A DNA stretch of 64,000 nucleotides from Geosiphon pyriformis uo1 (GCA_016748015.1 JAAOMT010000659.1:897166-961165); one strand, 5' to 3'; shown: positions 20,129 through 57,975, numbered from the stretch's first letter. Numbers and translations: made by a program. The notes: generated from the sequence alone by a model not told the origin.

Positions 20129-20563
20129 AATAATACGTCTTCGATCTACGCAGGTAATTTCATATATACATACCTATCCTGAATGAAACATCTGACAATC
20201 AAAAAAAAAGTCAACAATAATATTTAACTTTAGTTTTTGTTTATTATATTACTATGTAATCATGCGAAAGATATTTGATGCTTGTAGTTATTTAGAGCTA
20301 GCACGAAACACTTTACACAATATTCAAAATATTATTCTCAAAAATCACCCTATTTTTAATTTCAATTTAATCCTAAAAATTCTGCGTTCCCATCATAATT
20401 TGCTACAGCGCTAGCTACACTCAAAGGACTTTAAATCCTAAGCATAAAAAAGCGGTCACTAATAATGTGTCAGTACTGATCATCATTATTTACTAATAAA
20501 TTTCTGATATGGATAAGAGTTTCTTCTCTTTGAACCAAGTTTTAATCAAATTACCTTAAAAAT

Positions 20564-35976: not shown

Positions 35977-36659
35977 TTGGTATAAATGGTAGTCCAATTA
36001 TACATATAGATATTATTACTTATAAAAATTAAAAATTATAATAATAAATAAAATAACCAATCAAAAATAAGCATAGTAAAAAGAGGAATTGCAAGATTTC
36101 AAAATTACAAAATTGCAGAATTTTTTTCAAAAAATTTTGTATAACATAAATTATGTATATATAGTAAAAGTATTAAAAGCAAAAAAAGTAATTTCAAAAG
36201 AATTCAATAAAATAGATAAAATTTCATTCAGTTTAGAACAACAATATCTTTTCTTTCAAAAAATAATTTTCTATAACTTGAAATGGAATCATTTCCATAT
36301 TAATAAAATTATCTATTATCATCTAATCTATATTATAATTACTTGATTAAAAAAATATTAAATTATTTTACACTATTAACACTCCATGTTAATAAAATTT
36401 AATACTTTACTATACTGAATCAATAGCTCTTAATTATGGCTATTGATGAAATACTAATTTTTTATTTTTTTTTCTTATTTTTTTTTGTTTCATTTACTAA
36501 TTGATTAAAAAAATTAAACACTAAATATTTGATGTCAAAAATAGCCTGGTAAAAAACCTAGAAACAAGAGTAGAAATTTAAAGATAGCTTACCAGAAAGA
36601 CATGACTGCCAAAATAAACTGGCCACTATACTGAAAAAAAAATTCACAGAAGAAACCAT

Positions 36660-37630
36660 TGTTACCAGTAGAATTTTAGCTATTAATTAGCACGAAATTA
36701 TTTTCATAATTCCTATTATTAATTAGCATATTATTATCATTTCGATTATCACTTATTAAATTAGCCAAATTATCAAATATCATTACTCAATCAATAATCC
36801 GATTTGTACTCTAGAAATTAAGATGATCAAATTACACAATACCCTGAACCATTTAACATAGTCAAAATTCGCCGAAATTAATGAAAATTCGCCGAAATAA
36901 TCAATAGTTCAGTGAAATAACTTGTAAATTTGCTGAAATGTATTTTTAGTTCACCCAAATTGTAGCAAAGAGAAAAGTGCAAGTTCAAAGACTAGTACTA
37001 CAACAAGTTGTATAAAAGAAGAGCTTTTCTCTTCAAGAAAATGTATCCTTCCCATATCTTACTATAGTATTTTACTTTAGATATCTTAATTAGAACAAAT
37101 CACTTTTTTTACAAAATCAAATAAAAATTAAAATATTCAAAAACCAAATCCTTAAATTATTACACTTGAAATTTCTTCAACACAACTAACGTTTTGAAAT
37201 TGATTAGCTACCAATTTCAATAAACTGTTAGTGATTCCAGGCCTGGATAGAAAACGTTTCCCTTGACAGAATTCTATTTCTTTTACATTTCTTTTAGTTT
37301 TCTTTTATTTTCTTATTACAATTATTAGGGTAGCCTACAGACGAGATTCCTGTAGAAGAGTTGACTTTCACAGCAAAGTAACTACACATTTTAGTGAGCT
37401 TCCAGACGAGCAATTCCTGGGAAAGAGTTGACATTTACTACAATGTAACTACACAAAGTAACTGGTATGGAATTGGCCATTCTACTCATAAGCCCAGCAG
37501 TTCAAATTATAGGAGATAATTTGAAGATAAATTCAGTTACTGGAGGTCTAACTACTTTCTAAAAACGTGAATTTACAGCAAATCAACATTAACAACATTC
37601 AAGAAAAGAGACCAAAAACCTCTGGTAACA
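36660..37630 (+). repeat. A2 5' LTR
   Basis: TG...CA, followed by the PBS TTTGGTGCTCTCCC. About 96% identical to 55650-56620. Confidence 0.96.
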
Positions 37631-40600
37631 TTTGGTGCTCTCCCATAGAAATAACACAGCAACAACAAATTCAAAGTGGCAACCACACCAGACACAACAA
37701 CTCTAGAGTATTATCAGTCAATTTACACTCACTGCAAGCAAAGATTCAACATCCCAGACGGAATTGAGGTTGTCAAAAAATCAGTATACCAATACATTAA
37801 AAACCACATCAACAATTATCTTCTTGGAAATTACAACATCTCAGAAGTTAGAAGCAATCTTTACAATAATTTAGTGCACTATTCACAGTTGAGAACTGAA
37901 GACCTTAACAGTGAAACACTTGCCACTTACTTCCAAGAACTTAATTTTAACATTATCAAGTACTGTGAAGAAACATATCTAGTGCAGTCTCAATACTCTA
38001 TTGACTTTGAATCAGAAACAGAAACAAGCAACAAAGACAAACAAAAAGTGAAACAATACTCAAAAACCACCCCAAATACTCCAATACTACCAAAAACAAC
38101 TGCCAAACATTTGCAAACACCTGAACAAAGAACCAGTGTCAAATTACCACTTTCTATTACACCATTTCCAATTTCACTTGTTCAATCACAAACACCAAGT
38201 TCACCACTTAACTGTTTCTCCAGACCAGAAGATTATCAGTCACCTAGAAATCCTACTCAACAGCAAAAACCAATATTAACAAGTGCCAATATCATTGATT
38301 ACTTACAAGAAAACAAAAGTAATCATTCAAAGAGTCTAGAAAGTAAAGAAACTGAATCAGAACAAGAAAAAACTACAGAAAATAAAAAAGAAATGGCAAC
38401 TGCTTACATTGCAAAGATTTCAGAATTTACTGGTGAAGATAATAATACCAGTCTTCAAGAATGGCTTGACAAAGTTCAAAAAGCAGGAGATGCAAATGGA
38501 TGGAATGCAGTAAGAATGCTCAAAGCAATCTCATACTTTCTCCAAGGAACTGCAGAAGAATGGTTTGAAAACTTAGAAGAACCATTTGAAGACTGGCAAG
38601 CATTCAAAAATACTTTTTTACAACAATTTACCAATAACAACACCTCTATTACTCTTAAAAACCACTTTCGCAATATTAAGCAAAAAACATCTGAAACTGT
38701 TATGACCTATCTTGGAAGATTCAACAAACTTCTCAGACGAATTTGACAATTGGAAACCAATAACTATTATTCTGATGTTCAGATTCTGGACCAGTTTATA
38801 GCAGGATTAAAAGACAAACTAATTAAGAAAGTCCGCCCACATGCTCCAGCAAACTTAGCAACTGCTATTAGACATGCAAAGAGCTATAAAATGGCAATGG
38901 AAGAAACAAATCACACCAAGCTTGTAAACCTTGCAATTGGAAAAACCAGTTCAGCAGCTGAAGAGAAGATAGACCAATTCACAAAGAAAATTGAAAGCTA
39001 TTTTACAAACCAACAACAACAGCAACAACAACCACAAAGATATCAATCCCCACAATGACACAATCAAAACAACTTTGGATTACCATCTAACAACCAACCT
39101 CAAAATTGTTATTATTGTGGAATTTCAGGACATTAAAAATAAGATTGCAGGAAATTACAAAGAGACCAACAAAACAGGAGTAATTAACGTTACTCTTTAC
39201 TACAACAATCTTATTACCAATCTCTACCACCAACTTATTACTTACCAAGACCACAAAACCAAAACAATTACTATCAACCAGCTCCACAGCCAATACAGCA
39301 ACAATATTAGCAACTTTTACCAATTCAACAATATCAGACACTACCCATTCAACAATATCAAGTACCAGCCAGAAAATTGGTTCAACATAACCAATTTACA
39401 CACCAAAATTAATTTCAGAATAACAACAACAGAATCAATCCAAATAACCAGTTGGTTTCTCAAAATTCTGGTCAGCAAAGACCAATCACTATCCCACTCA
39501 ACCCAGTTATCTTACAATGTCTGAAGGATCGGATTTTCAACAACCTGCACTTTTTGAAGGTGAAGCTGCAGTACCAAAACAAAACTCTTATAACAATACA
39601 ATCCCACCAGCCCAAATTGCTCAAAATACCAACCTCTCAAATATATTCCCATTCGAATTTGAAGCAAATGAATCACCATTCTTGCTCAGTAATGCAGCAG
39701 CTAATGAACGAAAAGCTATCACTGTCATATACACTGAAGCTACAGTAGAAGAAAAACCCATCTGACTAATTCTAGACAGTGGATTAGCCAAAAGTATTAT
39801 CACCTACCAATTAATACAACAGCTTCAAAGAACTGTTGACAGACCAGCCCAAACTGTAATTGTTACAGCAGATGGTATGAAAAAGACACCAGTAAGAGAA
39901 ATTGACAATTTCTCATTTACCATTGATGGAATCACTATTCCAGTCAAAGTTTTAGTCATGGATGCACCCCAATACCAAGCTTTGGTTGGAAATGATTGGC
40001 TTCTTAAGACCAATGCAAACTTAGATTGGGAAACTCAAGAACTAAAAATCTTATACCAAAAACAATACACCATAGTACCTGCTACTTGTGATACTTTCAA
40101 CAAATGATCAGAAAAAGCCCCAGTATTTGAATTTGAAGAGAAAAAGGAAATGCCACTTATTAAAACCTACATGGCTCTTGGATTAACATCCAATTGGGCT
40201 GAGGAAACAGAACAAAAGATTTTTGAAGAATCAAGAAGATAGAAGAAAGTTAGATATTCTACACCAGAATCATGGAAACAACCACTCTATATTCCACTCA
40301 AATACAAAGATTGCAACAAGAAACTTTCATCAATGGGAGCATGTATTTCTTCAAAAGAGGAATATGAAACTCATACCTGTTAATTTTGCAAAACATGCCA
40401 TAAAGAACGATTTGGATATCCTAAAAGAAGTAGAAAATGGGACAACACTCCTTGCCTTACATGTGGGGATATATTACCAGAAGAATGCAACTGGATTGAT
40501 GTTGCAATAAGAGGAGGAGTATGTGATCAGACTTGTCAATATGCTCTATCAATTTCAGAAAAAGTCAGAAGAGGAACACCATTTAATGCAGCATACAACA

Positions 40601-41090
40601 ATGCTTTCAATAAACTTTACCACTACCCTCATAATGCTGAAATGATTTTTGACTTAGCAATGGCATTGATTAATAGAGCCACCCAAGAAGATGTCTGCTA
40701 AATGAAAGAAGCTGAATACATTGAGTATACTATAGAATTAGCTGGATTTGATTATGAAGATGAAATAGAAACCTACTACCAAATTGCAAGTCATACATAC
40801 CCAACCAAAGAAGCTCAAATTCAACAATTAGAGCAAATAAACATTCAATTGTGTGAAGAATGTATTATGCCTTGTGATAACTAATAGTGTTTAGAATGTT
40901 ATGCTCTTAGCATTCCTCTGCCAGATGAAAATGATGAAAATGAAATCGAATTTGGAGTATCTGAACTAGTAGAAGAACTACCAACCATTCCTATCTATCT
41001 TCTTAAAAAGCAACCACCTCTACAACTTAAATATTTTGACAACCATGGCCAAGGAATCAGACCAGAAAAAGCACACAAAATTGATGCTGG

Positions 41091-41928
41091 TGTTACAGGT
41101 GACTATTTCTGTTGTTGGATTAAATAAAAAAACCTGTAACTTGGTGCTCAAATCTAGTTGCCATTAATAGTGATCTGAAGGTTTTGTATCTGAAGATTTC
41201 GGTTAAAGTTCTTTGTATAATGGACAGAGATTCAATGGTGATAGTTTTATCCGTAGCTTTCCAAAACCGCAGTTTTGTCAATTTTTTTCTCAGCTTGATG
41301 GCTGGTATTCCCCCTGGTAAGTTATCTTCAATCGAGTGTTTTACCCTTATTCCTGGGTCTTTTACCAGTTATGTTTATCCTGACATCAGTGCCCCATGCA
41401 TTAATCCTCAATAGAGTTAGTAAACAACAATAAAATCAAAGCAAGAAAATAAAGAAGAGAAAAGAAAATAAAGAATGAAAAGAAATAAGCCAAGGCAATT
41501 TGTAAGTTTAGTATTCCGTTAATAGCCATAATCAAGAGCTATTGTTCTAGAGTAGTTAAGTATTGATTACTATTAACATGAAGTATTGATAGTGGAAATG
41601 GATTTGAGATAACAAATAGTTATTTATTAAATGATTGTGATTTTAAGAATTGTTTAGATTAAATCTAAACTTGAGAGGTCTGTTTTTTTAGCTTCTAATC
41701 CTACTGCTATATATACATAATTGAGATTTCTCAATTTCTCAATTCTTTGCAACAGGAATCCTGCAATTCCTAATGAAAAGAATCCTGGAATTCTGGAATC
41801 CTGTGATTCCTCGTCAGGGAATCCTAAAATTCTTGGAATCCTAAAATTCCACATTTACTATGTCTACATCTGATTGGCTAATATCTACTGACTAATAATA
41901 CTATATTTCTTATATTCTATGAGTAACA
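41091..41928 (-). repeat. B 3' LTR (838 bp)
   Basis: TGTTAC...GTAACA, direct repeat of 50350-51147. Confidence 0.95.
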
Positions 41929-41941
41929 TTATTCCCTCCTT

Positions 41942-42571
41942 TTAATATTGAGCTCCATCAAAATCTAATTCTTTTAATTCCCCTTCTTGAATTATTTCTT
42001 GAACTTCTTTTTTGAGGATTATTTGTGTTATTTTAGTTTGTAGTTTTTCAAATTGGGCATTGGTTATTTTTCCTAATTGATTACTCATAACTGTATCTAT
42101 TGCTGTGTTGAGTAAAATTTCTGGTCAGTCTTGAAATCTCATATATAGCCAGTAAATGGCTCAAGCTTGTGTGGTTAGATTGTTCTTTTCTACAAATTGT
42201 TCCAGTTGTCTCAGTATTGTTGTGTCAAATAACCGTTTTGTTTTGTCGGTGTACAAATTCTGGATATTTACGTGTTGTTCCAAGTGAAAATGACAATATT
42301 TTTTTGGAAATTGTTGCATCCATCAAGTCCAAGTTTTTCTGATAAGTTCTTGGTGTAATTCGACTATTTGTTGTTCTTTTATGGCCAATTTTATCTTGGT
42401 CATGATCTTGTCAACAATATTTTCAAGTCTTTTCTGTGCTTTGTGTTGTGGTATCTTTGCCATATTTTTGTAACAAATGGTTTGTTAATTGATTGTAATT
42501 TTTATCTCCTGGTGTTGGATTAATTGAAAAATTTGTTGGGCTAGTGAATAGATATTGTCTGTAATTTCCAT
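41942..42571 (-). pseudogene. B ORF3, uncharacterised ~209-aa protein between integrase and 3' LTR
   Basis: One frame MEITDNIYSL...LDFDGAQY* with four internal stops, each explainable by CAA>TAA or CGA>TGA. Homologous to A2 ORF3. Confidence 0.8.
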
Positions 42572-42625
42572 TTTTCTGATCTCTTTTGTCACGTCAACCA
42601 TGTTCTTATATATTCTTTTGTCGAT

Positions 42626-44007
42626 CAATTGGACATGTTATTGTCAATGATAATGATTGGTTCCAGATCTTATGGAATCTCATCTGGTTGGACTAGTATT
42701 CTCTGTATTCCTAATTGTGAAATATTACTGGTAGATGATGATGCTATATGGTGGTATGGTTTCAATCAATCTCCATGTGCTGCTTTGGTCAAGATTTTGT
42801 TATTCAATCTTAATTTGTAAGCTCCATTTTCTAAAATTTCTTCTATGTAAAATGGTCTGTTCTATTTGGGGTCAAATTTTCCACTCCATTGTTTTTCTGC
42901 TTTGGTACAATGTAAGAGTACTTTGTCTCCAATCTTGAATTCAACTGGTTTGTCTGGTAGTTGATTATCATGTCTTTCTTTCTGCTTTTCTTGTGACTTT
43001 TGTATATTATCAGCTGCTCTTTTTCGTTTGTTTTCCAATGTTTCCATTAAGTTATATGTTCTTCTTAACAATGTTTCTTGGAAATTCTCTTTTGTTATTG
43101 GTTCAGTTGGATATGTGGTAACCTCTATCTCAACTGGTAATATTGCTGTTCTACCATATATCAATTCAAATGGTGTTGCTTGTGTGGTGTCTTGCTTCAT
43201 TGTCCAATAAGCTAATAATACTGATGATATGAACAAATTCCATTTGTCTTGGTTTTCTTGGCTGAGTTTCACTATTGTTTTACACAATGTTCTATTAAAT
43301 CTTTCAACTAATCCATTGGTCTGTGGATGGTATAGTAATGATAGTGGTCTCTTAATTCCAAATCTTTGGCTTAGTTCTGCTAATGTTCTATTTACAAAAT
43401 GGGTTCCTTGGTCTGATAATAGTTCTTTTGGACATCTATGTCAACAAATCAAATCTTGATGGACAAATTTAACAATGAATTCTGCATCTGCTCTTTGAAT
43501 TGCTTTTGCTTTTGGCCATTTCATAAGGTAGTCTATGGCTACTGCAATATATCTGTTGCTTCTGCTGGTCATTGTCAATGGTCCGACTAAATCAATTCCA
43601 ATGCAGTCAAATGGTTGTCCCACTTTGATTGGTCTCAATGGTTCACTGGGTCTTGTTCCTTTTTTTCTTTGACAAGCATCACAATTTTGCACATATTGGA
43701 TGATGTCTGGATACATTGATGGCCAATAGTATCTCTTTCTGGTTCTTTCTATGATTGCTTCTTTATGAAAATGTCTTGCAGCTGGATCTGAGTGCATGTT
43801 AAACAGTATTGTCTCTTTTTTTGGTTCTGTAATTACTCTGGTTGGTTGATCTGAATCTTTTCTATTTTTCTGATAAAGTATATTTTGGTGAGTGATAAAA
43901 TATTTGGATTGTTGTTTGATCCTCTTTTGTTCTGATTGAGATAATTTCTCCTTGAACTGTTGAGTATCTATATAATGTTGAAATTGTTGATATTTTTGTG
44001 TGTTCAT
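42626..44007 (-). pseudogene. B integrase (HHCC, DDE, GPF/Y motif; no chromodomain), separate ORF
   Basis: MNTQKY..., H.....H...CDAC, IGIDLVGP, SDQG, NGLVERFN, (W)NRPFYI..L.NGAYKL. Confidence 0.92.
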
Positions 44008-44066
44008 CTTTTGTTATATTTTCGTGAGTCTTGTTTTGGTTGTTATATTTTTGAGTTGAAATGTTC

Positions 44067-47000
44067 TTAGATTTGTCTCATTCATGACAAACTGTCAGCA
44101 TTTCTATTGTCTTTTCCCTTTTTATAATGTATAGTATAATTATATGACGAAAGTGCCATTTTCTATCTTAACTGTCTTCCGTCTCCAAATTTTTGTTTTT
44201 GGAGTGATGTCAATCCTTTGTGATCTGTATACATCTCAAACTTTTGGCTCAAGTATTCTTTCTATTTCATAACTGCCCAGTATATCGCTAAGTGTTCTTG
44301 TTCTAGTGTTCCATAGTTCTTTTCAGCTGGTGTTAAACCTCTGCTGGCATATGCTATTGGATGTTTTCTGCTGTCTGGTCCTTTCTGAGATAGTACCACT
44401 TCTAATGCTTGGCCAAATGCATCAGTGGTGATAATGAATGGTTTGCTGTGATCTGGATAGATCAATACTAGAGCTTAAATGAGCTTTCTTTTCAAAATAT
44501 CAAAAGCTTCTTGTTGACTTTCTGTCCATTCATATTTTGTATTCTTGGTTTGCAGTTGGTTGAGTGGCTGCACTATCTTGGAAAAGTTCTTGATAAAACA
44601 TTGATAGTAGTTGGCAAATTCCAAGAATAATTTCAGTTTTGTCATATTGGTCAGCACTGGAAAGTTCTTTACTATCTCTATTTTCTCTGGATCTGTTTTG
44701 ATGCCATCTTTGCTGACTATGTGTCCCAAGAATTTTAGTTCTGTCTTGCCGAAAAAACACTTTGTTGCATTCAATTTTAATCCTGCTTGTCATAGTCTTT
44801 CAAATACTTGTTGGAGATGATGTAAATGATCATCAAATGTTTTTGAAAACACATTGGTATTATCCAAGTATACAACTACTGATTTTCACAATAAACTGGT
44901 GTACACAATTTCTATTAGCCATTGGAATGTAGCTGGAGCATTGGTTAAGCTAAATGGCATAACTTCAAACTCAAAGTTTCCTTCTCTTGTGGTGAACGCC
45001 GTTTTTTCTTTGTTGGCTGGATCCATGACTACTTATTAGTAACCACTATCCAAGTCTAATATTGAGAACCATTTGTTTCCACTGAAAGCATTGAATAATT
45101 CTTGTATCCATGGAGTTGAATAACTATTTCCACAAGTTACATCATTAAGTTTTCTGTAATCTACACAAAATTGGATTTTTCCATTCTTTTTTCGGACGAG
45201 TACTACTGGTAATGACCATGGGCTCATAGATGGCTGAATTAGCCCATTGTCAAGCATTTGATTGATCTCTTAACAAATGATTTCATGGCTGGCTGGTGGT
45301 ATTTTATATGCTCACTGTTTGATTGGCATTGTATCTTCAGTCTTGATTTGATGTTAGATGATGTCAGTTCTGCCGAATTTGTTTTCATTGGCAAAGATGT
45401 CATTGAAATTGTTGAGTAACATCTTGAGCTGTATACATTGTAGTGGGTCTAAATTTCTCATGTTCATTTGTTCTAATTGTTCTGGTTGGAGCAAATAACA
45501 TTTGTCTCGTCTATAAATTGTTTGTAATGTGATGTTGACATATTCACAAAATTGTGGAAAGTCTAGAATGGGGTTTGGTGGTTGGTTTTCTATTTCTGTG
45601 ATTAAATATCTGATGGTGGTTCCTTCTGATATGTTGATGACATTGCCAGTGTTATTGTAGATGGGAATTTTTATGTGGCTATAGCTTTTAGCTGATATGT
45701 GGAGATTGATCAGTCCAATCTCTCCTAATTCACAAAGGTTTGCTTCAGCTTCAAAAATCTGTTCTTGCTCCTTTTTTTTCTTTTTTATTGCTAGCATGTA
45801 CTGGCTAAATGATGGAATGAAAATAGCTTGACTGGTTAAAATAATTTCTTCTTGGCCAATAATTTCTTCCTCTGCCATATTAACTGGTACATCTATTTTA
45901 TCCATTGACCCAAATCCCTGTATCCCTCTTATTGTTATTCCTAACTCTTCCCTATTTCCTACTAATATTAACTGAGCTATCTTAACCAAAGGTAAGAATA
46001 TTGCCTGTACTATCTTTTTGTTTGGCTCTATTATATAGGTCTTTTTTGAGTCATTTTGTAGTATGGCAATGATATTTCCTACATATCCCGTGTCAATTAT
46101 TCCTCCTCTTATATTAATCCCTCTTTTTGCTAAACTACTCCGGAATGCTAGTTGAACTATTGTTGTTGCTGGGATTTCCAGTGCTATTTTCAGATCAATG
46201 CAAGTGCATGAATGTGGTTCCAATTTGATAGCATTTTTTCTTGGATACCTCAAATCAAATCTGGCATCAGTATCATGCATGCATTCTGACATAATACTTT
46301 CATTATTATCGCTGAACCATTTCAGTTTTTGTTTCTTGGTGAGGTCAGAAAGTGCAATATATTGTTCATAGTTTGAGTCAGAGTTTGAATTTGAGTTGAT
46401 ATTGTTATCATTGTCATTGCTATTTTGAATGGAGCTGGAACCATTATTCTCGTCATCATCATTGTCGGAGTTTAAATCAGGATTGAATGGTAATTTCAAC
46501 TTCAATGCACAGCTGCTGATTGGTTCTTCCTCTTCAGGGATCATGTAGATCATCCATGGTGGTGGATTGTAAATGAGGTCACAATCGTTACAATATTCAA
46601 AGTCACTGGAAATTAAACAATGGTGACACAGTCTTGTATTCAACTGTGCTAGCTGTTGTTTTTGCTCCTCTCTAGTGGGTGCCAAGTTTTGGTAGTGTTC
46701 ATGAAATTCTTCTGGTTCTAGGAAGTTTATGACTGGCTCTGCATCTCAGTTAAGCTCGATGGGTTCTGGTGGGTTGTTTTTAATTATTCTGATTTCTTCT
46801 GGCAACGTGCCTTCAATTTTGGTGATTGCCATTTGCCATAATTCATCATCATCGTGTGAACAACTGTCCAATCACTGTACAGCTCTTTTCCAGACGGCTT
46901 CTATTGGTGTTTCTTTCTCGACCTAGTCACTGATGAGGATTGTGTATTGGTAGAAAATGTTGCACATTCCTCCTTTCCCAAGAATGTCGTTCCACATTCC

Positions 47001-50000
47001 TTCATTGAAGAGAGTTTCTCCACAGGCTAAACATAGTGTATTATCCCATTTTCCCACTCATTTTGGTCTTCCAAAACGTTCGACAAGGCATGTGTGGCAA
47101 TAGAACTTGGTTGCTGTCTGATATTCTTCATTGTCGCCACAGCATGTGCCCATTGACAACAATTTCTTGCCACAATCAATACACACTAGTTTGAATCAGC
47201 GATAAGTGAATTGTTGTGGTGTTGTGTGTTGATAGGAAGTATACGTGTTTTTTGGCAGTGGCTCTTCTTTTTTTGCTTTTCCTTTTCCTTTGTTGCTTTT
47301 TTCCCATTCCCAGCTTGGTGTCAATTCCCTTTTATTGTTGTTGATCCAGATCAAGTCATCCATTTCCCAGGTATGTTCTTCTGTTTCTGTTCCTTTTCCC
47401 TTTACATTGTTCTTTTCTTCCCAATCTAGAATTGGCAGTAGCTTGTTGTGCTCGATGTCAGCTCATAATACTTGGTACGCCTCCCAAGTAGGCTTTGGTT
47501 TTTCCTCTTCGAAATTGATAAGCAGCATTGATGACATAATGTTGTTAGGTTTGAAATGGCCACACATGGCTGGTACTTGCATGTATTGGCCATTTTGGCT
47601 GAGTTGGAGTTCCTGTGTGTTCCAGTCAAACATTGCGTTGGTTTTAAACAACCAGTTGTTGCCAATGAGAGCTTAGTATTAAGTTGCTTCTATTACTAGT
47701 ACCTTGATTGGTACAGTAATGCTGTTGATTTCAATAGGTAGATTGTTAATCTCACCAATGGGAGTTTTGGTTGCTCCATTGGCTGTTATGATTCTGGTGC
47801 TGGCAGCACAATTAATTTAGTGACCTAATTGGTCCATGAGTTGTCATGTGATAATGCTGCCTGCTGACCCACTATCAAGAATGAGTTTGATAGAATGGCC
47901 ATCAATTTTTGGCATCAGTATACATCGCTATGATGGGTTTTTCCTCAATAGCAACTTCACTGAACAAAAGAACTTCTGATGTTTCCTCAATTTCAAATGA
48001 AAATATGGCTGTGAGTGACTTGTTTTCTGTAATGGTGGCTGGTGAGATATTGCTGGTAAGTGTTAATTGTAGGTTGGTTTTCAGTTCATTGGGTTGGACA
48101 TCTTCTGGGGTAACCAGAAGACTTAAATAGTTCTGGAAATTTGGGTTTTAGATGGAACCGGTACCCGAATTCCACTGTTGAAAGCCTGATGGTTGGTGAA
48201 AGAAGCTGGGAGTCAGTTGATGTACAACCATCACCAATCTCCAGTTTTGAGTGATTCTAGATCTTGGGTTTTCTAATGTCATTTGAGTGGGGTTTTGGGG
48301 TGGCATTTGAATTGGTTGTTGGGGCTGATAAATTATTTGGGGTTGCGGCTGATAGATTACTGGTGGCTGTAGTTGATAAATTGGAGGTTGATATACTGGT
48401 AGTTGATAGATTGGTTGTTGTGTCATTGGCAAGTAAGTGGTTTGATATTGGTCTTGATTTGGGTAGCAATTTTGAGTCTGAAATCTGTAATCAGGGTTTT
48501 GATATTGATTTTCCGATCATGAATAGTTGCTATAAAATCTGCAGTCTGCTTTTATGTGTCCTTGTTTACTACAGTTGTAACAAACATGTGTTTCTGGCTG
48601 CCATGACTGATTAGGTGCTGCTGATAATGGATGTGACTGATTTTGGAAATGATTCGCATTTCCTGGATTATTGCGTCATTTTAGTAGTTGATAAATGGTG
48701 TGATTGTCAGCTAAGTATCTTTCTAATTTCTGATTAATTGAATCACTGAATTGTTTCAATTTGGAATCCAATTCAGATGATCCATTCATCACTAAGTTTA
48801 CAGCATGGGTGTGATTGGCTTCTAATTCGGCAGATTCAAAATCTCTGGCATATGTGACTGTGTTCTGGAGAGTGGCTGGATGCAATGGGCATATGTGTTG
48901 TAGGATGCTACTGCACAGATCACAAATGAATTGATTGAGAATTTGTGGTGCTATGAAATAATTAGTATCAATTGCTTGGATTTGTCGCAGATTTCTATGG
49001 AAGCATCTCAAATATGTGGTAACTGCTTCAGTTTCTTCTTGTTTAATTGTAGTGAAAGTGTTGGCTAATCTGTTGATACTGTTGTTATTGCTAAAATATC
49101 TCAAAAATTCTAGTTTGAAGGCATTAAAATCTTGGAGTTTGTTAACCAGGCTTTGATACTATGAGTCTGCTGTATTCTTGAGAAAATAGGGTATGGCTTG
49201 CATGACTCTGGCATCATTCTATTCATTGGCTGCAATGGCTTTTTCTATATTGTTTAGCCAAACTTGTGCATTGTTTTTTTCACTGGTGAATTTGTCGAGC
49301 TTTACGATTGGTGCATATGCTATTTGTTGTTGTTGCTGTGGTAGAAGTTGTTGTTGTTGTTAAGGCAGTACTGGGGGTAGTTGTTGATTTTGTTGATTTG
49401 GTGTTTAGATGGGCTGGCCAATTGGTTCAACTGGTGGTTAATTGATGATGATAACTGGAGGTAAGTGCTGATTAATTACTTTGGGGTTTTGATTTTGCGG
49501 TGCTTGAATATTTGGGGTTTTGATTTCTGGATTTTCTTGCTGAGTTTGAACATTCGGGGTTCCAAATTCCAGGTTTTCAAGGATCGGGTTTTGGTAAGTA
49601 AATTCTTGATCTTTCAATTCCTCTTCCTCTTCTTCTTCAGATAGTTTTCACGGGGTAGCAGTTCCAAAGTCTGGTTGAGACGGCAGTGATTGAATTCCTA
49701 ATGATGTTGGTAATCATGATTTAAATCCTTCAAAATATTTGCCTTATGGTCCTAATAACTCCTGCTTTTTTTTGTTTACTTTGGAATGAAAATTGTCCAA
49801 ATGTTGATGTCACGTTTGGTGTGAACATGCCTGCAGATGAAATATTGATAGTGCTTCTGAGTGTGTAATGATATGATGAATATGGTTGAGATTCAATTCT
49901 TTGTTTCTTTCAGATTGGTAGTTGTATCTCTTTAGGCATTACTGCTGGTGTTTGTAACCTTCTTTTGCCTTTATCTGCATAGGTGATAGGAAATTGTTGT

Positions 50001-50287
50001 TGAGTGTACCTTTCAATAGTTTGGTTGATTTCTCTAATTATTGATGTGAAACTATAGTTCCTTGGTAAGTTGGTGTGTTGATATAATTTTGTGTAAAAGT
50101 TTTCTCTTGCTGCTTCAATGTTAACTGTTCCTCCTAAGCATTTAGTGATTTTGTCATTGACATAGAAGTTGAAGACTAATTCGGTTGGGTAATGATTACT
50201 GTTTAATCCTAATTGTTGGCTGTATTGTTGAAACAAAGATTTCGCAAATCCTAAATGGTTTGCTCCTATATTTTCTGATTCTGCCAC
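44067..50287 (-). pseudogene. B gag-PR-Cys-rich-dUTPase-RT-RNase H
   Basis: CYNCSKQGHIKADC, LILDSGSAGS, dUTPase ARFDL / RSS / GGIIDTGYVG / QGFGS (in 45354-46685), RT PWS.PVVLVRKK, FCVDYRKLN and YLD(D), RNase H IITTDA...PIAYASR. Confidence 0.92.
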
Positions 50288-50349
50288 TTTTGGTTTGTTC
50301 TTGTTGATGCTAGTTCTCTGTAGGATTATACCTCACAGGGAGCACCAAA

Positions 50350-51147
50350 TGTTACAGGTAACTATTTCTGTTGTTGAATTAAATAAAAAAACCTCTAACT
50401 TGGTGCTTAAATCTAGTTGCCATTGATAGTGATCTGAAGGTTTTGTATCTGAAGGTTTCAATTGAAGTTCTTTGTATAATAGACAGAGATTCAATGGTGA
50501 TAGTTTTATCCATAGCTTCCCGAAACCACAGTTTTATCAATTTCTTTCTCAGCTTGGTGGCTGGTATTCTTTTTGGTAAGCTATCCTCAATCAAGTGTTC
50601 TATCCTTATTCCTGGGTCTTTTACCAGTCACATTTATCCTGACATTAGTGCTCCGCATGTTAATCCTCAATAGAGTTAGTAAACAACAATAAAATCAAAG
50701 CAAGAAAATAAAGAAGAGAAAAGAAAATAAAGAATAAAAAGAAATAAGCCAAGGCGATTTGTAAGTTTAGTATTCTGTCAATAGCCATGATCAAGAGCTA
50801 TTGTTCCAGAGTGGTTAAGTATTGATTACTATCAACATAAAGTGTTGATAGTGGAAATAGATTTGAGATAACAAATAGTTATTTATTAAATGATTGTGAT
50901 TTTGAAAATTGCTTAGATTAAATCTAAACTTGAGAGGTCTGTCTTTTCAGCTTCTAATCCTACTGCTATATATACATAATTAAGATTTCTCAATTCCTCA
51001 ATTCTTTGCGACAGGAATCCTGGAATTCCTGAAATCCTGCAATTCTTCTAAGAGAAATCTTAGAATTCCACACTTACTACGTCTACATCTGATTGGCTAA
51101 TATCTACTGACTAATAATATTATATTTCCTATATTCTATAAGTAATA
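50350..51147 (-). repeat. B 5' LTR (798 bp)
   Basis: Adjacent to the PBS. 40 bp shorter than the 3' LTR in a GGAATCCT-type tandem array. Confidence 0.95.
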
Positions 51148-53427
51148 CTGGATATGATCTAAGATACCCAGGAAAAGATACTTTAGTTCTCCAACCAAAG
51201 TCCTTGACAAAAATCAATCTCAAAATTGCTCTTGAAATATTACTAGGAGCAATAGTTCAAATTGTCTCCAAATCATCATTGGCAAGCAAAGGAATCAATA
51301 TTAGAGAAGGAGTTATAGATGCAGGATATACTGAAGACATTACCATCATGTTGCAAAATAAAACAGACAAACCATTCAAGATTGAACATGCTGAAAAAAT
51401 TGCTCAAGCAATTTACCTACCCTTAATTAATATTTTGGGTCTACAATCAGTTAACAACAGAGAACAATTGAGAAAAAATGAAAGAAGAATGCAAGGTTTT
51501 GGTTCAACTGGACAATTTACAGTTCCAATAAACATAGCCCTTAATATACAAAATGAATCTCACCAGATTCTTTAACTTCTCCAACCAATTACCATTTCAC
51601 TTTTTGGAGAACATTACAAAATTTACACTTGCTTAAAACCCACTATTACTCAACAAATCTTTGAATCCAATGAACAAATCTGTTTGAAGTATGAAATCTC
51701 AATTCCAAACGTTTATATTCCCAAAGGAATGAAAAAATTTTGAGTTACATTCTATAATCCCAATAATTACTCTATTGTATTATTAAACAAATTAGAAATT
51801 GGAATCATACACAGCAATATTTTTCAAGATAAAAACTCTCAAATTGTCTCTAATTTTATCGAAATTATAAGGCACACTCTACTCCCAAATCCAAATATCA
51901 TTTCCACCACTGAAAACTATTATTTTTTGGAAGAAAAACTCTCTTAAATCAACATGGGTCCCTTAGAACCTCAACAACAAAGACAATTAAAACAATTGAT
52001 AGCTGAATTTGCAGATATATTTGCAAAAGACAACAATGACCTGAGAAAAACGGATATTATTCAACATCAGATTCATACAGGAGATGCTCCACCAAAACAT
52101 CAGCAAGCTTACAGAGTGTCACCTGCCAGCCACCAATTCATCAGAGAAAAAGTCCAGAGAATGCTCAATAATAGATTGATTTAATTATTAAAAAGTCCTT
52201 GGGCCTTACCAGTAGTCCTTGTTAAAAAGAAAAATGGAAAAATCAAATTTTGTGTTGACTATTGCCAATTGAACAATATGACAATTGGAGATGCCTATCT
52301 TCTTCCAAGAATTGATGACATGCTAGATGTTCTAGAAAAAGCCAAGTTCTTCTCAACTTTAGACTTGGAAAGTAAATACTGGCAAGTCGAAATAGACCCA
52401 AAAAACCTACCCAAAACAGCATTTACCACCCAGGAAGGAAACTATGAGTTCAATATTATGCCTTTTGAACTTTGCAATGCATCAGCAACATTCCAGCAAC
52501 TTATGGATGTTGTATATGAAGGACTCTTATGGCAATCAGTAATTGTCTATCTTGATGACACTGATGTATACTCACCAAGCTTTGAAGCTCACCTCATTCA
52601 CCTACAAGAAGTTTTTTAACAATTATGGAAAGCAGAATTAAAGTTAAACATTGAGAAATGTCACTTTGGAAAAACAAGCTTAATCTTTCTTGGACACATT
52701 GTGAGCAAAGATAGAGTTAAACCAAACCCTGGAACAATCAGTGCTGTCAAAAACTTCCAAACTCCCAAAAATATTACAGAGCTATGAAGATTTGTAGGAT
52801 TAGCCTCCTACTATTGGAAATTCATCAAAGAATTCTCAGAAATTGCCAAACTACTTAATTATCTTACCAACAAAAATGTGCTATACAAATGGGTGGAAGA
52901 ACAACAAAAAGCTTTTGAAACTCTCAAAACAAGATTGACAACAGTTCCAGTTCTTGCTTACTCAGATTTCAACAAATAGTTCCAACTAGCCACTAATGCT
53001 TCACATATAGCATTTGGTGCCATCCTATCACAATTAGATAAAAATGGCCAGAAACAAGTCATTGTCTATGCCAGTAGAACATTCAAGCCAACAGAACTCA
53101 AATATGGCTCAACTGAATTGGAAGCTGTTGCAGTTATTTGGGCTCTTAAACATTTTCAACAATATCTGAAGAATGGAAAAAAATTTGATATCATAACTAA
53201 CAATATTGGTCTTAAATGGCTTAATAAAAAGAAAACTGAACAAAGTATCAAACAGTCTTAATGGAATAACTTTTTAGCAGACTACAAATATATTGTACAC
53301 CACAAACCAAAAAAACTACACACTAATGTTGACAGTCTCTCAAAAATAAAACAATATTAATACCAACATTAACACCAACAAAACACCAACAAACTTAACA
53401 GCAAAACAAACAACAAAATCAACAACA

Positions 53428-54813
53428 ATGAATCCAGAAAACTACAACAACATTAAAAACTATTTGGAGACTTTCACCATGTCAGAAAATTGGTCTCCAA
53501 GTGAAAAACATCGATTACAACACCAATTCAAACAATATTTTATACACCACAACAAAATCTATTACAAAAATTGTAAAAACCCAAACCAATCACTCAGATT
53601 AGTACAGGAAAATGAAAATGAAACAATTCTATACAACATGCACACAGATTCTTCTTCAGCACACTTGGGAAGAGATGAAACAATTCAAAGAACTCTTGAA
53701 CATTATTTTTGGCCTCACATGTAAAAAGACATTTAATAATATATAGAATTTTGTGATAGTTGTCAAAGAAGAAAAGAAATTCACTCCACAGAACCTTTAA
53801 ATCCAATCAAAGTTGGACAACCTTTTGACAGAGTTGGAATTGATTTAGTCGGACCATTATTTATTACAATTCAAGAAAATTGCTATATTGCAGTAGCAAT
53901 AGATTATCTTACCAAATGGCCTGAAGCTAGAGCCATTCAAAGAGCAGATGCAAAATCAGTAGCAAATTTTATCTATAAAGACATTATTTGTAGACATGAA
54001 TGCCCAATTGAACTTTTATCTGATCAAGAAACACATTTTGTAAACAACTTGATACAAAAAATTTGTGAATAGTTCAATGTCAAAAGACCTTTATTATTAC
54101 CTTATCACCCTCAAACAAATGGACTTGTAGAACATTTCAACAGAACATTGTGTGAATCTTTAGCCAAAGTTTCAACAAATTTTGAGCAGGAATGGGATAT
54201 CTTTATTCTATCAGTGTTACTAGCATACAGAACACTAAAACAAGATACTATGAAACACACACTATTTAATCTTACTTATGGAAGAACAGCAACACTACCA
54301 ATTAATTTCACAGTGGAAACATACCCAATACAACCAATCAATAAAGAAAACTTTCAAGAAACACTCCAAAGAAGGGCCTACACTTTTCTTAGTACACTAG
54401 AAAGAAAAAGAAGGATAGCAGCAACTCATATTGAATATTCCCAAGCTCAACAAAAAGAAAGACATGACAACAAATTACCACCTATTACCAATGAATTTAA
54501 AGTTGGAAATAAAATTCTCTTACACAGAACTAAGGCTGAAAAACCATGGAATGGAAAATTTGAAAACAAATGGGATGGACCATTTTATATTCACGAAATT
54601 TTAGGCAATGGATCATACAAGTTAAGACTTGATGACAAAATACTAGCAAAAGTTGCACATAAAAACAGATTGAAACACTATCATTCCAAAAACAATCCTA
54701 AATCATTAATTTCACAAATTGGTATACATTCTTCTTTAATTAATTCTGAAGATATTCCCCAAAATTTAGAACCAATAATTATAATAGAACAACAACCAAA
54801 CTTGAACACTTAA
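53428..54813 (+). pseudogene. A2 integrase (HHCC, DDE, GPF motif), separate ORF
   Basis: MNPENY..., MHTD...AHLG...CDSC, VGIDLVGP, SDQ, NGLVE, WDGPFYIHEILGNGSYKL. Confidence 0.92.
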
Positions 54814-54963
54814 TTCAACATAATTTTACAATAATCTTTTAATAACACACAAAGACAAAAATAGTATATAATTACAAAAACACCCAAACCCAAAAACAAA
54901 TAAAACCCCATATCCAAAAATAATTTCTTTATTCTCCCTTTTTATTAATTAGTCAATTTTATC

Positions 54964-55669
54964 ATGATTATTCCCCAAAATATTTAACAAATATTCCAAA
55001 AATTAATGTTAGCTTTGAAAACACTTCCTGACTTGTCCATAACGATTAATGGAAGTCAAATTAAATACATTCAGAAAGAAATCACAGCCCCAATAGTAAA
55101 TAATTCTCAAAACTATCACCTTTATAGAAAAAAAACAAGAAGTCACTCTGGAAATAGATTACCAGAACTTTTGAAGCAAGCACTAAAAGAAAACTTTTTA
55201 ATTGCTCCTATTGACATTCTACCAAATATCACATTGCAACAAAAACTTTTACTATTCCTCAATGAATAGAACAATGAATATACCCCTATATATAGATATT
55301 TTCACATGGAAAAAACACTTTATAAACGAAAACTAAAACTTAAAGCAACCAACATCACTCCTGAGACTACAAAAACAAATTCACAATGAATTTAAGGCAG
55401 CAGCTGGACCAACAAATACTTGCTACAAACTTAGAGCAGCTTTTAGACTCTATAATTTGTTCAACACTTGTGAAAAGGTCCTACAAAATCCAATACTGCA
55501 ACCAATAAAAGTTCAATACATTGGCAAACTCACAGAACTGAAATTTCAACAATTTTCAGACCAAATCACTTCAATTATTCTGGACCATTATCTTGACATC
55601 ACAGATAGTGCTTGGACTTCGATGGAGCTCAGTCTTGAGGAGGAGATTATGTTACCAGTAGAATTTTAG
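54964..55669 (+). pseudogene. A2 ORF3, uncharacterised, homolog of B ORF3
   Basis: MIIPQNI*QIFQKLML... in frame with ORF 55006-55269. One frameshift at ~55372 leads into ...RAAFRLYNLFNTCEKVLQ (ORF 55457-55669). Confidence 0.75.
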
Positions 55670-56620
55670 CTATTAATTAGCACGAAATTATCTTCATAAT
55701 TCTTATTATTAATTAGCATATTATTATCATTTCGATTATTACTTATTAAATTAGCCAAATTATCAAATATCATTACTCAATCAATAATCCGATTTGTACT
55801 CTAGAAATTAAGATGATCAAATTACACAATACCCTGAACCATTTAACATAGTCAAAATTCGCCGAAATTAATGAAAATTTGCCGAAATAATCAATAGTTC
55901 AGTAAAATAACTTGTAAATTTACCGAAATGTATCTTTAGCTTACCCAAATTGTAGCAAAGAGAAAAGTGCAAGTTCAAAGACTAGTACTACAACAAGTTG
56001 TATAAAAGAAGAGCTTCTCTCTTCAAAAAAATGTATCTTTCCCATATCTTACTATAGTATCTTACTTTAGATATCTTAATTAGAACAAATCACTTTTTTT
56101 ACAAAATCAAATAAAAATTAAAATATTCAAAAACCAAATCCTTAAATTATTACACTTGAAATTCCTTCAACACAACTAACGTTTTGAAATTGATTAGCTA
56201 CCAATTTCAATAAACTGTTAGTGACTCCAGGCCTGAATAAAAAATGTTTCTCTTAACAGAATTCTATTTTTTTTACATTTCTTTTAGTTTTCTTTTATTT
56301 TCTTATTACAATCATTAGAGTAGTCTACAGACAAGATTTCTGTAGAAGAGTTGACTTTTACAGCAAAGTAACTACACATTTTAGTGAGCTTCCAAACAAG
56401 CAATTCCTGGGAAAGAGTTGACATTTACTACAACATAACTACACAAAGTAACTGGCACGGAATTGGCCATTCCACTCATAAGCCCAGCAGTTCAAATTAT
56501 AGAAGATAATTTGAAGATAAATTCAGTTACTGGAGGTCTAACTACTTCCTGAGAACATGAATTCACAGCAAATCAACATTAACAACATTCAAGAAAAGAG
56601 ACCAAAAACCTCTGGTAACA
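55650..56620 (+). repeat. A2 3' LTR
   Basis: Preceded by the PPT and followed by TSD CCAT. Confidence 0.96.
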
Positions 56621-57013: not shown

Positions 57014-57975
57014 TATTATCAGAGATTTTTAAGATCTCTTTTCTTTAATATTTTTAATGTTTGTATGTTGTGAATTCATATTTCCAGAAAGTAGTTAAAT
57101 CTTTGATAACTGAATTTATTTTCAAATTATCTTCTATAATTTGAATTGTTGAACTTATAAGTAAAATGGCCAATTTTGTGTTAGTTATTTTATGTAGTTA
57201 TGTTGTAATAAACATTAACTCTTTCTTAGGAATTGTTCATCTGGAAACTTACTAAAAATGTGTAGTTACTTTGTAGTAAAAGTCAACTTTTTTACAGGAA
57301 TCTCATCTGTAGGTTACTCTAATGTTTATAATAATAATAAAAAATAATAATAAAAGAAATAAAATTTCATTAAAGAAATTGTTTCTAGTTTAGGGCTAGA
57401 ATTACTAATGGTTTACTAAAATTGGTAGTTAATCAATTTCAAAACATTAGTTGGGTTTTCAGTAAATTTCAAGTATAATATTTTTAAAAAATTTATTTTT
57501 TGAAATATGCTTTTTATTTGATATAAAAGTATAGATATTATTGTATAAAAGGATAAATTTAAAATAAAATACATTTTTTTAAAGTGAGAAGCTCTTCTTT
57601 TATATAACTTGTTATAGTACTAGTTTATAAACTTGAACTTTTTTCTTTACTATAATTTTGACAAACCAAAGATACATTTCAACAAATTACAAGTTATTTT
57701 GATAAACTATTAATAATTTTGGTAAACTATTCATTATTTTGGTGAATGTTTTACAAATTTTGGCAAATTTTTGAATACTACATAATTTGAGATATTGTGT
57801 AATTTGATCATCCTAATTTCTATTGTACAAATCAAGTTATTAATTAAATAGTAATATTCAATGATTTAATAAAATAATAAGTAATAATTGAAACAATAGT
57901 AATATATGCTAATTAATAATAGAAATTATAAAGATAATTTTATGTTAATTAATAGCTAAAATTTTATTGGTAATA
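57014..57975 (-). repeat. Solo family A LTR inserted in element C gag
   Basis: Reverse-complement match to the A LTR. Flanks TTGT/CTGC (4-bp TSD with two C>T changes). C gag continues across it. Confidence 0.85.

Follow-up and report, generated by a model that had tools for sequence, protein, structure and literature searches.

What kind of process has mutated the transposons at this locus? The window, by which we mean the whole stretch of 64,000 nucleotides analysed here, comes from Geosiphon pyriformis uo1, a member of the Glomeromycotina (GCA_016748015.1, JAAOMT010000659.1:897166-961165), and it is 72% AT. At 36660-56620 it contains a Ty3/gypsy element, A2, and an earlier note had proposed from such repeats that this genome has a repeat-directed pathway acting on cytosines with a 5'-pyrimidine preference.

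Organisation of the locus

The window contains the following features.

36660..37630, plus strand: 5' LTR of A2 (Ty3/gypsy), 971 bp, TG...CA ends, 95.8% identical to 55650-56620
37631..41090, plus strand: left internal part of A2, split off by element B; gag ORF at 37676-38746 (Pfam Retrotrans_gag)
41091..51145, minus strand: element B, a second Ty3/gypsy element with dUTPase, nested in A2; LTRs 41091-41926 and 50350-51145
51146..55649, plus strand: right internal part of A2, pol/integrase remnants; SH3_Tf2-1 match at 54148-54813
55650..56620, plus strand: 3' LTR of A2, 971 bp, paired with 36660-37630
1..5070, minus strand: A0, an A-family copy without B, truncated by the window start, with an assembly gap within its LTR
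34994..35978, plus strand: old A-type solo LTR, GC 0.19, which served as an outgroup
57014..57982, minus strand: old A-type LTR copy, GC 0.20, with zero CpG remaining
36087..36659, plus strand: repeat C, older, the target of the A2 insertion; resumes at 56621-56770, second copy at 61320-62081
6001..17500, no strand: strongly decayed repeat blocks, GC 0.10-0.26; comparable blocks at 24300-26000 and 33200-36000
17751..24250, no strand: host gene island, 6.5 kb between decayed blocks, the internal control
~21961-23502, minus strand: SSH4/SPRY-type gene in the island
19229-20128, plus strand: R/S-rich ORF in the island

A2 is flanked by a CCAT target-site duplication, and the second copy of repeat C provides its empty site; the two copies of repeat C differ by 73 transitions and 10 transversions. 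The empty site for B is found in A0, and the target duplication of B is GCTGG/ACTGG. A0 aligns with A2 on either side of this point (362-4736 with 41090-36722 at 86% identity, 1-368 with 51512-51145), the two copies differing by 446 transitions and 99 transversions.

Differences between paired LTRs

The A2 LTR pair contains 41 differences, 26 C/T and 15 G/A, with no transversions and no indels; alignment thus reproduces the count in the earlier note. When the C/G state is treated as ancestral, 9 of these are at CpG, 22 at TpC(H), 5 at CpC(H), 4 at GpC(H) and 1 at ApC(H), nearly identical to the earlier tally of about 10 CpG, about 22 TpC, 5 CpC and 4 ApC/GpC. Of 39 informative sites, 33 have the C/G state in one or more of the three outgroup LTR copies. 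Per available site the changes amount to 9/30 for CpG, 22/101 for TCH, 5/42 for CCH, 4/42 for GCH and 1/86 for ACH (TCH against ACH, Fisher p=7e-6). The excess at TpC, whose disappearance on normalisation had been named beforehand as grounds for rejecting the idea, therefore persists. The B pair is also dominated by transitions, 68 in all, although the single transversion counted before was slightly too few. There are five, three of them adjacent to one another and next to an indel, together with two deletions; within the first 683 bp, which align without gaps, there are 55 transitions and two transversions. The TCCCCC>TCTTTT run described in this pair is present.

Pooling of eight LTR pairs, which represent seven loci and three (sub)families, gives 390 transitions and 16 transversions, a ratio of about 24:1. 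The fraction of ancestral cytosines that differ is 0.44 for CpG, 0.22 for TCH, 0.17 for CCH and 0.07 for both GCH and ACH; relative per-site rates are approximately 7 (CpG) : 3.4 (TpC) : 2.6 (CpC) : 1 (GpC/ApC). A 5' pyrimidine in place of a 5' purine raises the odds of change 3.3-fold (YCH against RCH, p=2e-17), and this effect is independent of local AT content and of whether the cytosine lies in a CpG. The logistic odds ratios are 4.7 for CpG, 2.7 for T and 2.3 for C at -1, 1.7 for a pyrimidine at +2 and 0.89 per 10% of local AT; the -1 base is the chief determinant of mutability, with weaker effects of pyrimidines at -2 and +2. Among trinucleotides TCG is the highest of all (.52); the values are.41 for ACG,.40 for CCG,.38 for GCG,.25 for TCA,.23 for TCC and.19 for TCT.

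The earlier description of the process as targeted to TpC and CpG is right in that a genuine 5'-pyrimidine preference exists beyond CpG and recurs across the eight pairs, but there is no strict target. Cytosines after a purine still differ at about 7% (ACA.065, GCA.076), compared with a transversion difference of about 0.3% per base of alignment. All cytosines are thus affected, and context only modulates the rate two- to three-fold. Non-CpG cytosines change at 25-70 times the transversion rate, with the 5'-pyrimidine bias. Compared with C-to-T, the frequency per site of transversions, indels and reverse T-to-C changes is 10-50-fold lower. CpG decay alone is insufficient, as had been claimed, because only 106 of the 390 transitions (27%) are at CpG. 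The spectrum also differs, as suggested, from that of Neurospora, since among non-CpG sites no preference for CpA or CpT is seen (NCA.143, NCC.199, NCT.130). As a method control we used L007, a related element from another organism. It has 36 transitions and 12 transversions (3:1) and displays only CpG decay, the YpC bias being absent.

Direction and timing of the mutations

Mutations private to single copies were counted in eight element copies. They comprise 886 C>T/G>A changes (501 C>T, 385 G>A), 209 T>C/A>G changes and 117 transversions. Per site, the C>T rate is 4.95% and the G>A rate 5.69%, so the process is strand-symmetric. Premature stop codons across eight copies were made by pure C>T/G>A changes in 128 of 144 cases (CAA>TAA 71, CGA>TGA 14, TGG>TGA/TAG/TAA 29, CAG>TAG 11), in agreement with the stop types reported previously. 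Differences between paired LTRs must postdate integration, since the two LTRs belong to one insertion. Integrated Ty3/gypsy copies thus lose cytosines through C-to-T change on both strands after insertion. The private spectrum implies an equilibrium GC content of about 11%, which agrees with that of the oldest blocks (10-18%), and over time elements of about 33% GC become blocks of 10-15% GC with little TpC or CpG left.

These observations exclude editing of cDNA during reverse transcription, including the APOBEC type that places G>A on the plus strand before integration. APOBEC3 restriction resembles the Geosiphon process in its TpC/CpC preference and in its retroelement targets, but the changes here are post-integration and strand-symmetric, and they include CpG and purine-flanked cytosines.

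Decayed blocks and the gene island

In the oldest repeats (GC 0.15) an A precedes 47% of the remaining cytosines, and the dinucleotide odds ratios are 0.65 for TpC, 1.10 for ApC and 2.06 for GpC; the claim that cytosines survive in AAC, ACC and AGC contexts as TpC is consumed is to this extent borne out. Across the decayed blocks CpG o/e is 0-0.5 and the TpC odds ratio 0.36-0.8, and the blocks exceed the classical RIP thresholds for TpA/ApT, (CpA+TpG)/(ApC+GpT) and CRI (+0.20). The transposons have a CpG o/e of 0.09-0.24 and a CpA odds ratio of 1.3-1.4. Young elements are internally depleted in CpG (o/e ~0.1) but not in TpC (odds ratio ~1.0); the left internal part of A2, 86% identical to A0, has these values.

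The gene island has a GC content of 0.31-0.41, a CpG o/e of 0.76-1.05 (0.93 overall) and a TpC odds ratio of 1.03-1.24. No 250-bp window below 25% GC lies within 17751-24250, and no loss of TpC or GC is seen in the island, including its 1.8 kb of intergenic DNA. The adjoining repeats have a CpG o/e of 0-.3 and a GC content as low as.10, and the borders between island and decayed blocks are sharp. In this window the process is restricted to transposons and adjacent genes are spared, because an island between decayed blocks retains 31-41% GC, a CpG o/e near 1 and normal TpC. The same spectrum and rate in unique non-coding DNA, named earlier as an outcome that would count against a repeat-directed process, was not observed in the unique gene island.

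These values bear on the simplest alternative, an ordinary mutational bias of an AT-rich genome that is seen in transposons only through their neutrality. The genome is AT-rich overall, as this view expects. However, the island is free of 250-bp windows below 25% GC despite a predicted equilibrium of ~11% GC, CpG o/e falls from ~1 to 0-0.3 across sharp borders, and the related L007 decays at a ratio of only 3:1. At the scale of the present window a genome-wide bias is largely refuted, and we consider it hardly credible as the explanation.

Tempo of mutation

Strand- or copy-coordinated runs were not found in the pooled data, where 78 adjacent same-copy, same-strand pairs were observed against 69.9 expected (p=0.14). 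There is no excess of tandem CC>TT (5 adjacent pairs in the same copy, 6 in different copies), and one copy contains a CCCC>TTTT run. Linked LTR repeats are not hit more heavily: private C>T per site is similar in LTR and internal regions at the loci L003, L004 and L005, and in A2 it is lower in the LTRs. CpG and YpC decay co-vary across the eight pairs (r=0.77, p=.024), with a positive intercept when YpC decay is regressed on CpG decay. This co-variation agrees with gradual accumulation no less than with bursts. Mutation does not proceed as a uniform clock, since B, which is nested in A2 and hence younger, has diverged further than A2.

Comparison with known systems

Like RIP in Neurospora crassa and other Pezizomycotina, the process makes only C:G>T:A changes, on both strands, is limited to repeat and transposon DNA, creates stop codons and leaves AT-rich blocks beside normal genes; the old blocks pass the RIP index thresholds. 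It differs in its preference for a 5' T or C plus CpG, where RIP prefers a 3' A (CpA), in the absence of strand-coordinated runs and of heavier mutation in linked repeats, in a mutation load that grows with element age, and in its host, which belongs to the Glomeromycotina, where RIP is reported absent (PMC8647823, PMC7082362). Pucciniomycotina (Microbotryum, Puccinia, Melampsora) have a hypermutation confined to TpCpG, with no excess at TpCpH or VpCpG (Horns et al. 2012, PMC3318451). The two share a RIP-like C>T excess in non-ascomycete transposons and the involvement of a 5' T and CpG, and TCG is the top trinucleotide in Geosiphon too. The rust trinucleotide is strict, whereas in Geosiphon TCH (0.22) and ACG, CCG and GCG (0.38-0.41) are each strongly raised alone, so a 5' pyrimidine and CpG act separately and their effects approximately add up. 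The methyl-CpG decay of vertebrates, plants and basidiomycetes is similar in that CpG decays fastest, with a transposon CpG o/e of 0-0.3, an excess of TpG/CpA and genes near 1. It differs in that most Geosiphon LTR transitions lie outside CpG, with a 5'-pyrimidine bias; L007 is an example of plain CpG decay. The pattern fits none of canonical RIP (CpA), the TpCpG hypermutation of rusts and smuts, APOBEC cDNA editing and UV damage.

Possible mechanisms

We tentatively favour, at a little short of probable, an explanation in which the silencing of transposons makes their cytosines mutable. Transposon DNA would be marked by the silencing machinery, the likeliest mark being dense 5-methylcytosine in CpG and non-CpG contexts. 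The 5mC, or a cytosine bound in a methyltransferase complex, would deaminate to T (or U), and the resulting mismatch would be repaired poorly in heterochromatin. The preferences for a 5' pyrimidine and, more weakly, a +2 pyrimidine may be the flanking preference of the non-CpG methyltransferase or deaminating enzyme, and accumulation would be mostly gradual, across the whole element, rather than in one burst. Arbuscular mycorrhizal (AM) fungi are reported to have DNMT1, DNMT2, DNMT5, DIM-2 and RID, and very high 5mC (PMC8298701), and transposons of R. irregularis are heavily CpG-methylated (PMC8647823). Against this explanation, we found no demonstration of non-CpG methylation in AM fungi in the literature searched, and the CpT preference reported for Neurospora DIM-2, 3' rather than 5' (PMC13297926), is not matched here. 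The transition excess suggests something more active than passive decay. Methylated plant transposons decaying passively have LTR transition:transversion ratios of only ~2-4 and form no blocks of 10-15% GC. Young elements that lack CpG but not TpC are easier to explain if a YpC component kills copies in pulses, and the positive YpC intercept and the divergence of the younger B also sit poorly with silencing-linked mutability.

The same observations favour a true RIP-type system, which is possible but doubtful. It would recognise homology, probably at a rare pre-meiotic or dikaryotic stage, and deaminate in pulses through RID/DIM-2 homologues with YpC (+CpG) specificity. The extreme transition excess across all cytosine contexts, the sharp-bordered AT-rich blocks that pass the RIP indices, an active lineage that is CpG-depleted yet TpC-normal (as expected if hit copies die), the positive intercept, the different rates of the nested elements, the CCCC>TTTT run and the RID and DIM-2 homologues reported from AM fungi (PMC8298701) are all consistent with it. 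The missing runs, the linked repeats mutated no more than internal regions, the absent CpA preference and the joint rise of CpG and YpC decay argue against it, sex is unproven in Glomeromycotina, and Gigaspora margarita is reported to be without RIP signatures (PMC8647823, PMC7082362). The repeat-directed pathway proposed earlier is partly supported: the restriction to transposons, the near transition-only spectrum and the 5'-pyrimidine bias stand, and several RIP hallmarks (runs, linked-repeat excess and CpA) were looked for and not found. It is improbable that silenced transposon chromatin recruits a DNA cytosine deaminase dedicated to this role, either AID/APOBEC-like or derived from a bacterial toxin and DddA-like (5'-TC on double-stranded DNA). 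A TpC/CpC preference set by the -1 base is classic for such enzymes and is what we observe, on both strands of integrated DNA. CpG rates are highest whatever the 5' base (ACG and GCG included), which points to 5mC, ApC and GpC sites are strongly raised too, and the clustered strand-coordinated runs were not found. Sunlight damage at dipyrimidines, which would become fixed mainly where methylated heterochromatin is badly repaired, is still less probable. Geosiphon bladders are exposed to light at the soil surface, and the UV signature is C-to-T at dipyrimidines (TpC, CpC); the 5'-pyrimidine preference, the weaker -2/+2 effects and the near absence of other substitutions agree with it. Same-copy tandem CC>TT is not in excess, purine-flanked cytosines are mutated although unable to dimerise, and the island with its intergenic DNA is unaffected in TpC and GC.

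Significance

AM fungi are said to lack RIP and to use methylation and RNAi against a very large transposon load (PMC8647823, PMC7082362 on the absence of RIP), and in the literature searched we found no report of RIP-like mutation in Geosiphon. This glomeromycotinan has a transposon-restricted, near-pure C-to-T erosion that makes blocks of 10-15% GC beside normal genes, under a context rule (CpG > YpC > RpC) unlike either known type of fungal hypermutation. Dating of transposon bursts by Kimura or LTR divergence would be badly biased in such genomes, and CpA-based RIP indices would be blind to the young stage of the process. The pattern offers a testable handle on the role of RID and DIM-2 homologues in early-diverging fungi, and it bears on the existence of non-CpG methylation in AM fungi. 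It is unlikely that Geosiphon and possibly other Glomeromycotina have a homology-triggered RIP through RID/DIM-2 homologues with 5'-pyrimidine/CpG specificity. If they do, the origin of RIP would predate the split of Dikarya and Mucoromycota and, since RIP acts just before meiosis, its traces in the genome would testify to a sexual or dikaryotic stage in fungi long thought asexual, bearing on the old question of cryptic sex in Glomeromycotina.

Organisation of the window

The window has an A+T content of 72% and consists mostly of nested LTR retrotransposons, which surround one small gene island. Its principal features are:

36660–56620, + strand: A2, a Ty3/gypsy element with 971-bp LTRs and the target duplication CCAT
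37676–38746: gag ORF of A2, with more than 400 matches in a protein search
41091–51145, − strand: B, a second Ty3/gypsy element nested within A2, with its own target duplication
1–5070, − strand: A0, the third A copy, which keeps an empty site for B
34994–35978, 57014–57982 and about 8081–9080: older A-type LTRs
6001–17500, 24300–26000 and 33200–36000: decayed repeat blocks, GC 0.10–0.26
19–1119 and 45354–46745, both − strand: dUTPase domain, also found at 13643–15229 of the Geosiphon locus L006
About 21961–23502, − strand: SPRY/SSH4-type host gene, for which Gigaspora rosea and Acaulospora supply the best named relatives

A2 integrated into repeat C, which is older and retains an empty site near 61930. 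Families A and B both carry the dUTPase domain, which is placed between the protease and the reverse transcriptase. The dUTPase-bearing family is very large in Geosiphon, with 1399 database proteins at E<=1e-20, of which the best 120 are all from this species. The same is true of the best 120 of the more than 400 matches to the A2 gag ORF, so that no other AM fungus is present among the best 120 matches listed in either search. The locus of the best gag match is 100% identical to 27467–49058 of the window, which places the window on Geosiphon pyriformis contig JAAOMT010000659.1 (GCA_016748015.1), at about 897166–961165. It is a curious coincidence that a uracil-excluding dUTPase is encoded by elements that are later destroyed via cytosine deamination.

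A representative-protein search returned matches from a pseudoscorpion, Chara, a microsporidian and ENA contigs. Relatives of the protease/reverse transcriptase part of family A were also sought in a library of 1.8 billion proteins (proteins P0361, P0364–P0371, P0375). Outside Geosiphon, the top-scoring ones come from the pseudoscorpion Cordylochernes scorpioides; they are very long gene models, about 44–51% identical over the matched stretches, and the similarity probably reflects shared Ty3/gypsy ancestry.

The A0 LTR contains a gap of 20 Ns (4737–4756) between 246-bp segments that are 100% identical (4491–4736 and 4757–5002), which almost certainly arose during assembly or scaffolding and is not biology. 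A second run of Ns lies at 63059–63306. The gene island includes a low-complexity ORF of 299 aa rich in R, S and D (19229–20128, + strand), which has no Pfam match. Its mirror ORF of 286 aa (19249–20109, − strand) is probably a by-product of repetitive codon composition. A tRNA scan of the window found none.

Substitutions between paired LTRs

The two LTRs of A2 differ at exactly 41 positions, all of them transitions, with no indels; this recount agrees with the figures in the earlier note. Comparison with three outgroup LTRs supported C/G as the ancestral state for 33 of the 39 informative sites. The B LTRs (41091–41926 and 50350–51145) are also dominated by transitions, as had been claimed, with 68 of them counted. 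The single transversion previously reported for this pair was a slight undercount, there being five (three adjacent and next to an indel), together with two deletions. The sequence shown alongside these counts is GENERALISING. The excess of changes at TpC persists after normalisation per available site, the TCH and ACH rates in A2 being clearly separated (p=7e-6).

Changes by cytosine context (TCH, CCH, GCH and ACH are non-CpG cytosines by 5' base; relative rates are approximate and corrected for double hits)
Context	A2 differences	A2 per site	B per site	Eight LTR pairs, fraction of sites	Six LTR pairs, relative rate	Private changes, eight copies
CpG	9	0.30	0.64	0.444	7.5	10.6%
TCH	22	0.22	0.26	0.219	3.4	6.9%
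CCH	5	0.12	0.27	0.169	2.6	5.0%
GCH	4	0.10	0.06	0.072	1.2	4.1%
ACH	1	0.01	0.12	0.073	1	3.4%

Two local peculiarities were seen. Derived changes in the 5' LTR of A2 are unequal on the + (sense) strand, at 15 C>T against 2 G>A (11 against 13 in the 3' LTR). This asymmetry was not reproduced in five other LTR pairs examined and is treated as chance or local. In one B LTR copy only, at a TCCCCC run, CCCC has become TTTT. It is the sole such run seen, is unlikely under independent hits and may be a rare processive event.

Seven further Geosiphon loci were retrieved via annotated TE proteins, and six of them hold further complete LTR pairs, which belong to family A and to a subfamily with about 76% identity to it. 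Pooled, the eight LTR pairs have 390 transitions and 16 transversions. Cytosines with a 5' pyrimidine (YpC) differ more often than those with a 5' purine (RpC; OR 3.3, p=2e-17), and the TCH rate exceeds the ACH rate in each of the eight pairs. The base at −1 has by far the largest effect (p=1e-9); pyrimidines at −2 and +2 act more weakly, and G is disfavoured at +2. A joint logistic model gave odds ratios of 4.7 for CpG, 2.7 for T at −1, 2.3 for C at −1 and 1.7 for a pyrimidine at +2. In the same model higher local AT slightly lowers the odds, which rules out AT-richness or DNA breathing as the source of the TpC bias. Misassigned polarity was checked against the three outgroup LTRs and against singleton changes across eight copies; any admixture of T>C changes would make the TpC/ApC contrast smaller and could not produce it.

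Eight A-family copies were placed on one coordinate frame, and changes private to a single copy were counted from per-column majority states. These comprise 501 C>T, 385 G>A, 209 T>C or A>G, and 117 transversions. C>T and G>A occur at nearly the same rate, hence these changes carry no strand bias. The rate per site-copy is 5.3% for GC>AT against 0.65% for AT>GC, which puts the predicted equilibrium GC at about 11%, matching the oldest repeat blocks. In this set the context contrast is damped by the omission of hot sites that were hit in two copies. Premature stops are pure C>T or G>A products in 128 of 144 cases, CAA>TAA foremost.

Restriction to transposons

The host island, a gene-bearing, non-repeat segment (17751–24250), served as an internal control. 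Its GC is 0.31–0.41 per kilobase throughout, with CpG o/e of 0.76–1.05 and a TpC odds ratio of 1.03–1.24; a 1.8-kb intergenic stretch within it has values of 0.32, 0.93 and 1.01, respectively. The surroundings have CpG o/e of 0–0.3, and their most decayed kilobases reach GC 0.10–0.18 and a TpC odds ratio of 0.36–0.78. Composition changes within about 250 bp at the borders. Given the equilibrium GC predicted above, the spectrum is clearly not acting on the island. A genome-wide mutational bias, the chief challenge foreseen in the earlier note, is therefore rejected from the island's composition, intergenic DNA included, and the repeat specificity claimed there stands.

All three classical RIP indices are passed by the decayed blocks (TpA/ApT 1.10, (CpA+TpG)/(ApC+GpT) 0.91, composite +0.20), even though CpA is not the favoured context. 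With a composite of −0.6 to −0.9, young elements do not pass, thus index-based RIP scans would give results that depend on element age in this genome.

The single usable comparator, a method control, was a related dUTPase-gypsy element on a metagenome contig of an AT-rich eukaryote (L007; ENA ERZ25039530 contig_55115, 4269–15565). It is nearly intact, with ORFs of up to 1064 aa. Its LTR pair has 36 transitions to 12 transversions (3:1), with differences at 9/22 CpG, 7/112 TCH and 9/78 ACH sites. This is plain CpG decay without the extra YpC component. The Geosiphon observation is real, statistically strong, reproducible over loci and families, and transposon-specific.

Accumulation of the mutations

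The process acts after integration, because the LTRs of single insertions differ by it. It hits both strands, whole elements and every cytosine context, in the order CpG > YpC > RpC. Clustering and runs tests for strand- or copy-coordinated mutation runs were negative, and same-copy tandem CC>TT changes are not in excess over different-copy adjacent hits (5 against 6). The private C>T load in LTRs equals that of internal regions at three loci (L003, L004 and L005). CpG and YpC decay rise together across the eight pairs (r=0.77, p=0.024), with a positive YpC intercept. Together these results favour many independent hits over time over few processive events.

At insertion the A2 LTR had 30 CpG against about 22.5 expected (~1.3x), and CpG o/e in the internal coding region of A2 is about 0.1. 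It seems that the active lineage has kept a CpG-island-like promoter LTR with a long-term methylated body. The interiors of young elements likewise have CpG o/e of about 0.1, yet their TpC is 1.0, with no depletion. Since interior CpG is depleted while the A2 LTRs were CpG-rich at insertion, the CpG process has long been active on the live lineage. The YpC process shows itself in dead copies alone, which is what would be expected of a process that kills the copies it hits.

The nesting order presents a paradox. B lies inside A2 and is hence younger, yet its LTRs diverge by about 8–9%, with transversions and indels, against 4.2% for A2. The mutation rate evidently differs between elements. Gene conversion between the LTRs, a mutation intensity that varies from element to element, or duplication of A2+B as a composite could be the cause. 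The A2 LTRs are less mutated than the A2 interior and some homogenisation is possible, but gene conversion accounts for the discrepancy only in part, and there is no clear inflation of shared derived sites.

Possible mechanisms

We tentatively prefer a methylation- or heterochromatin-coupled deamination of cytosine in CpG as well as non-CpG contexts, in which the deaminating or methylating enzyme would impose the flanking-base preference. A serious, though less probable, rival is a true RIP system that would be triggered by homology and have a new specificity. Three observations pull towards a process more active than passive decay: the extremes of spectrum and GC, the intact TpC of young elements and the B/A2 divergence. 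In methylated plant and animal transposons the transition:transversion ratio and GC decay are less extreme than the 24:1 and 10–15% GC seen in Geosiphon.

The changes arose after integration and are strand-symmetric, which excludes cDNA editing by an APOBEC-like enzyme. Damage by UV is unlikely: purine-flanked cytosines still differ at about 7%, tandem CC>TT changes are not in excess and genes are spared.

According to published work, Gigaspora margarita and Mucoromycotina lack RIP signatures (PMC8647823, PMC7082362), and the TEs of Rhizophagus irregularis show heavy CpG methylation (PMC8647823). DNMT1, DNMT2, DNMT5, DIM-2 and RID, along with very high 5mC, are attributed to the AMF clade (PMC8298701). 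A recent comparative study of AMF TEs, Geosiphon included, mentions neither RIP nor transition bias (PMC11952901), and our literature search found no paper tying Geosiphon to RIP. The RIP-like target in Pucciniomycotina is strictly TpCpG (PMC3318451), from which the Geosiphon pattern differs. The process in Geosiphon is a repeat-directed C-to-T hypermutation that is new in form relative to known systems.
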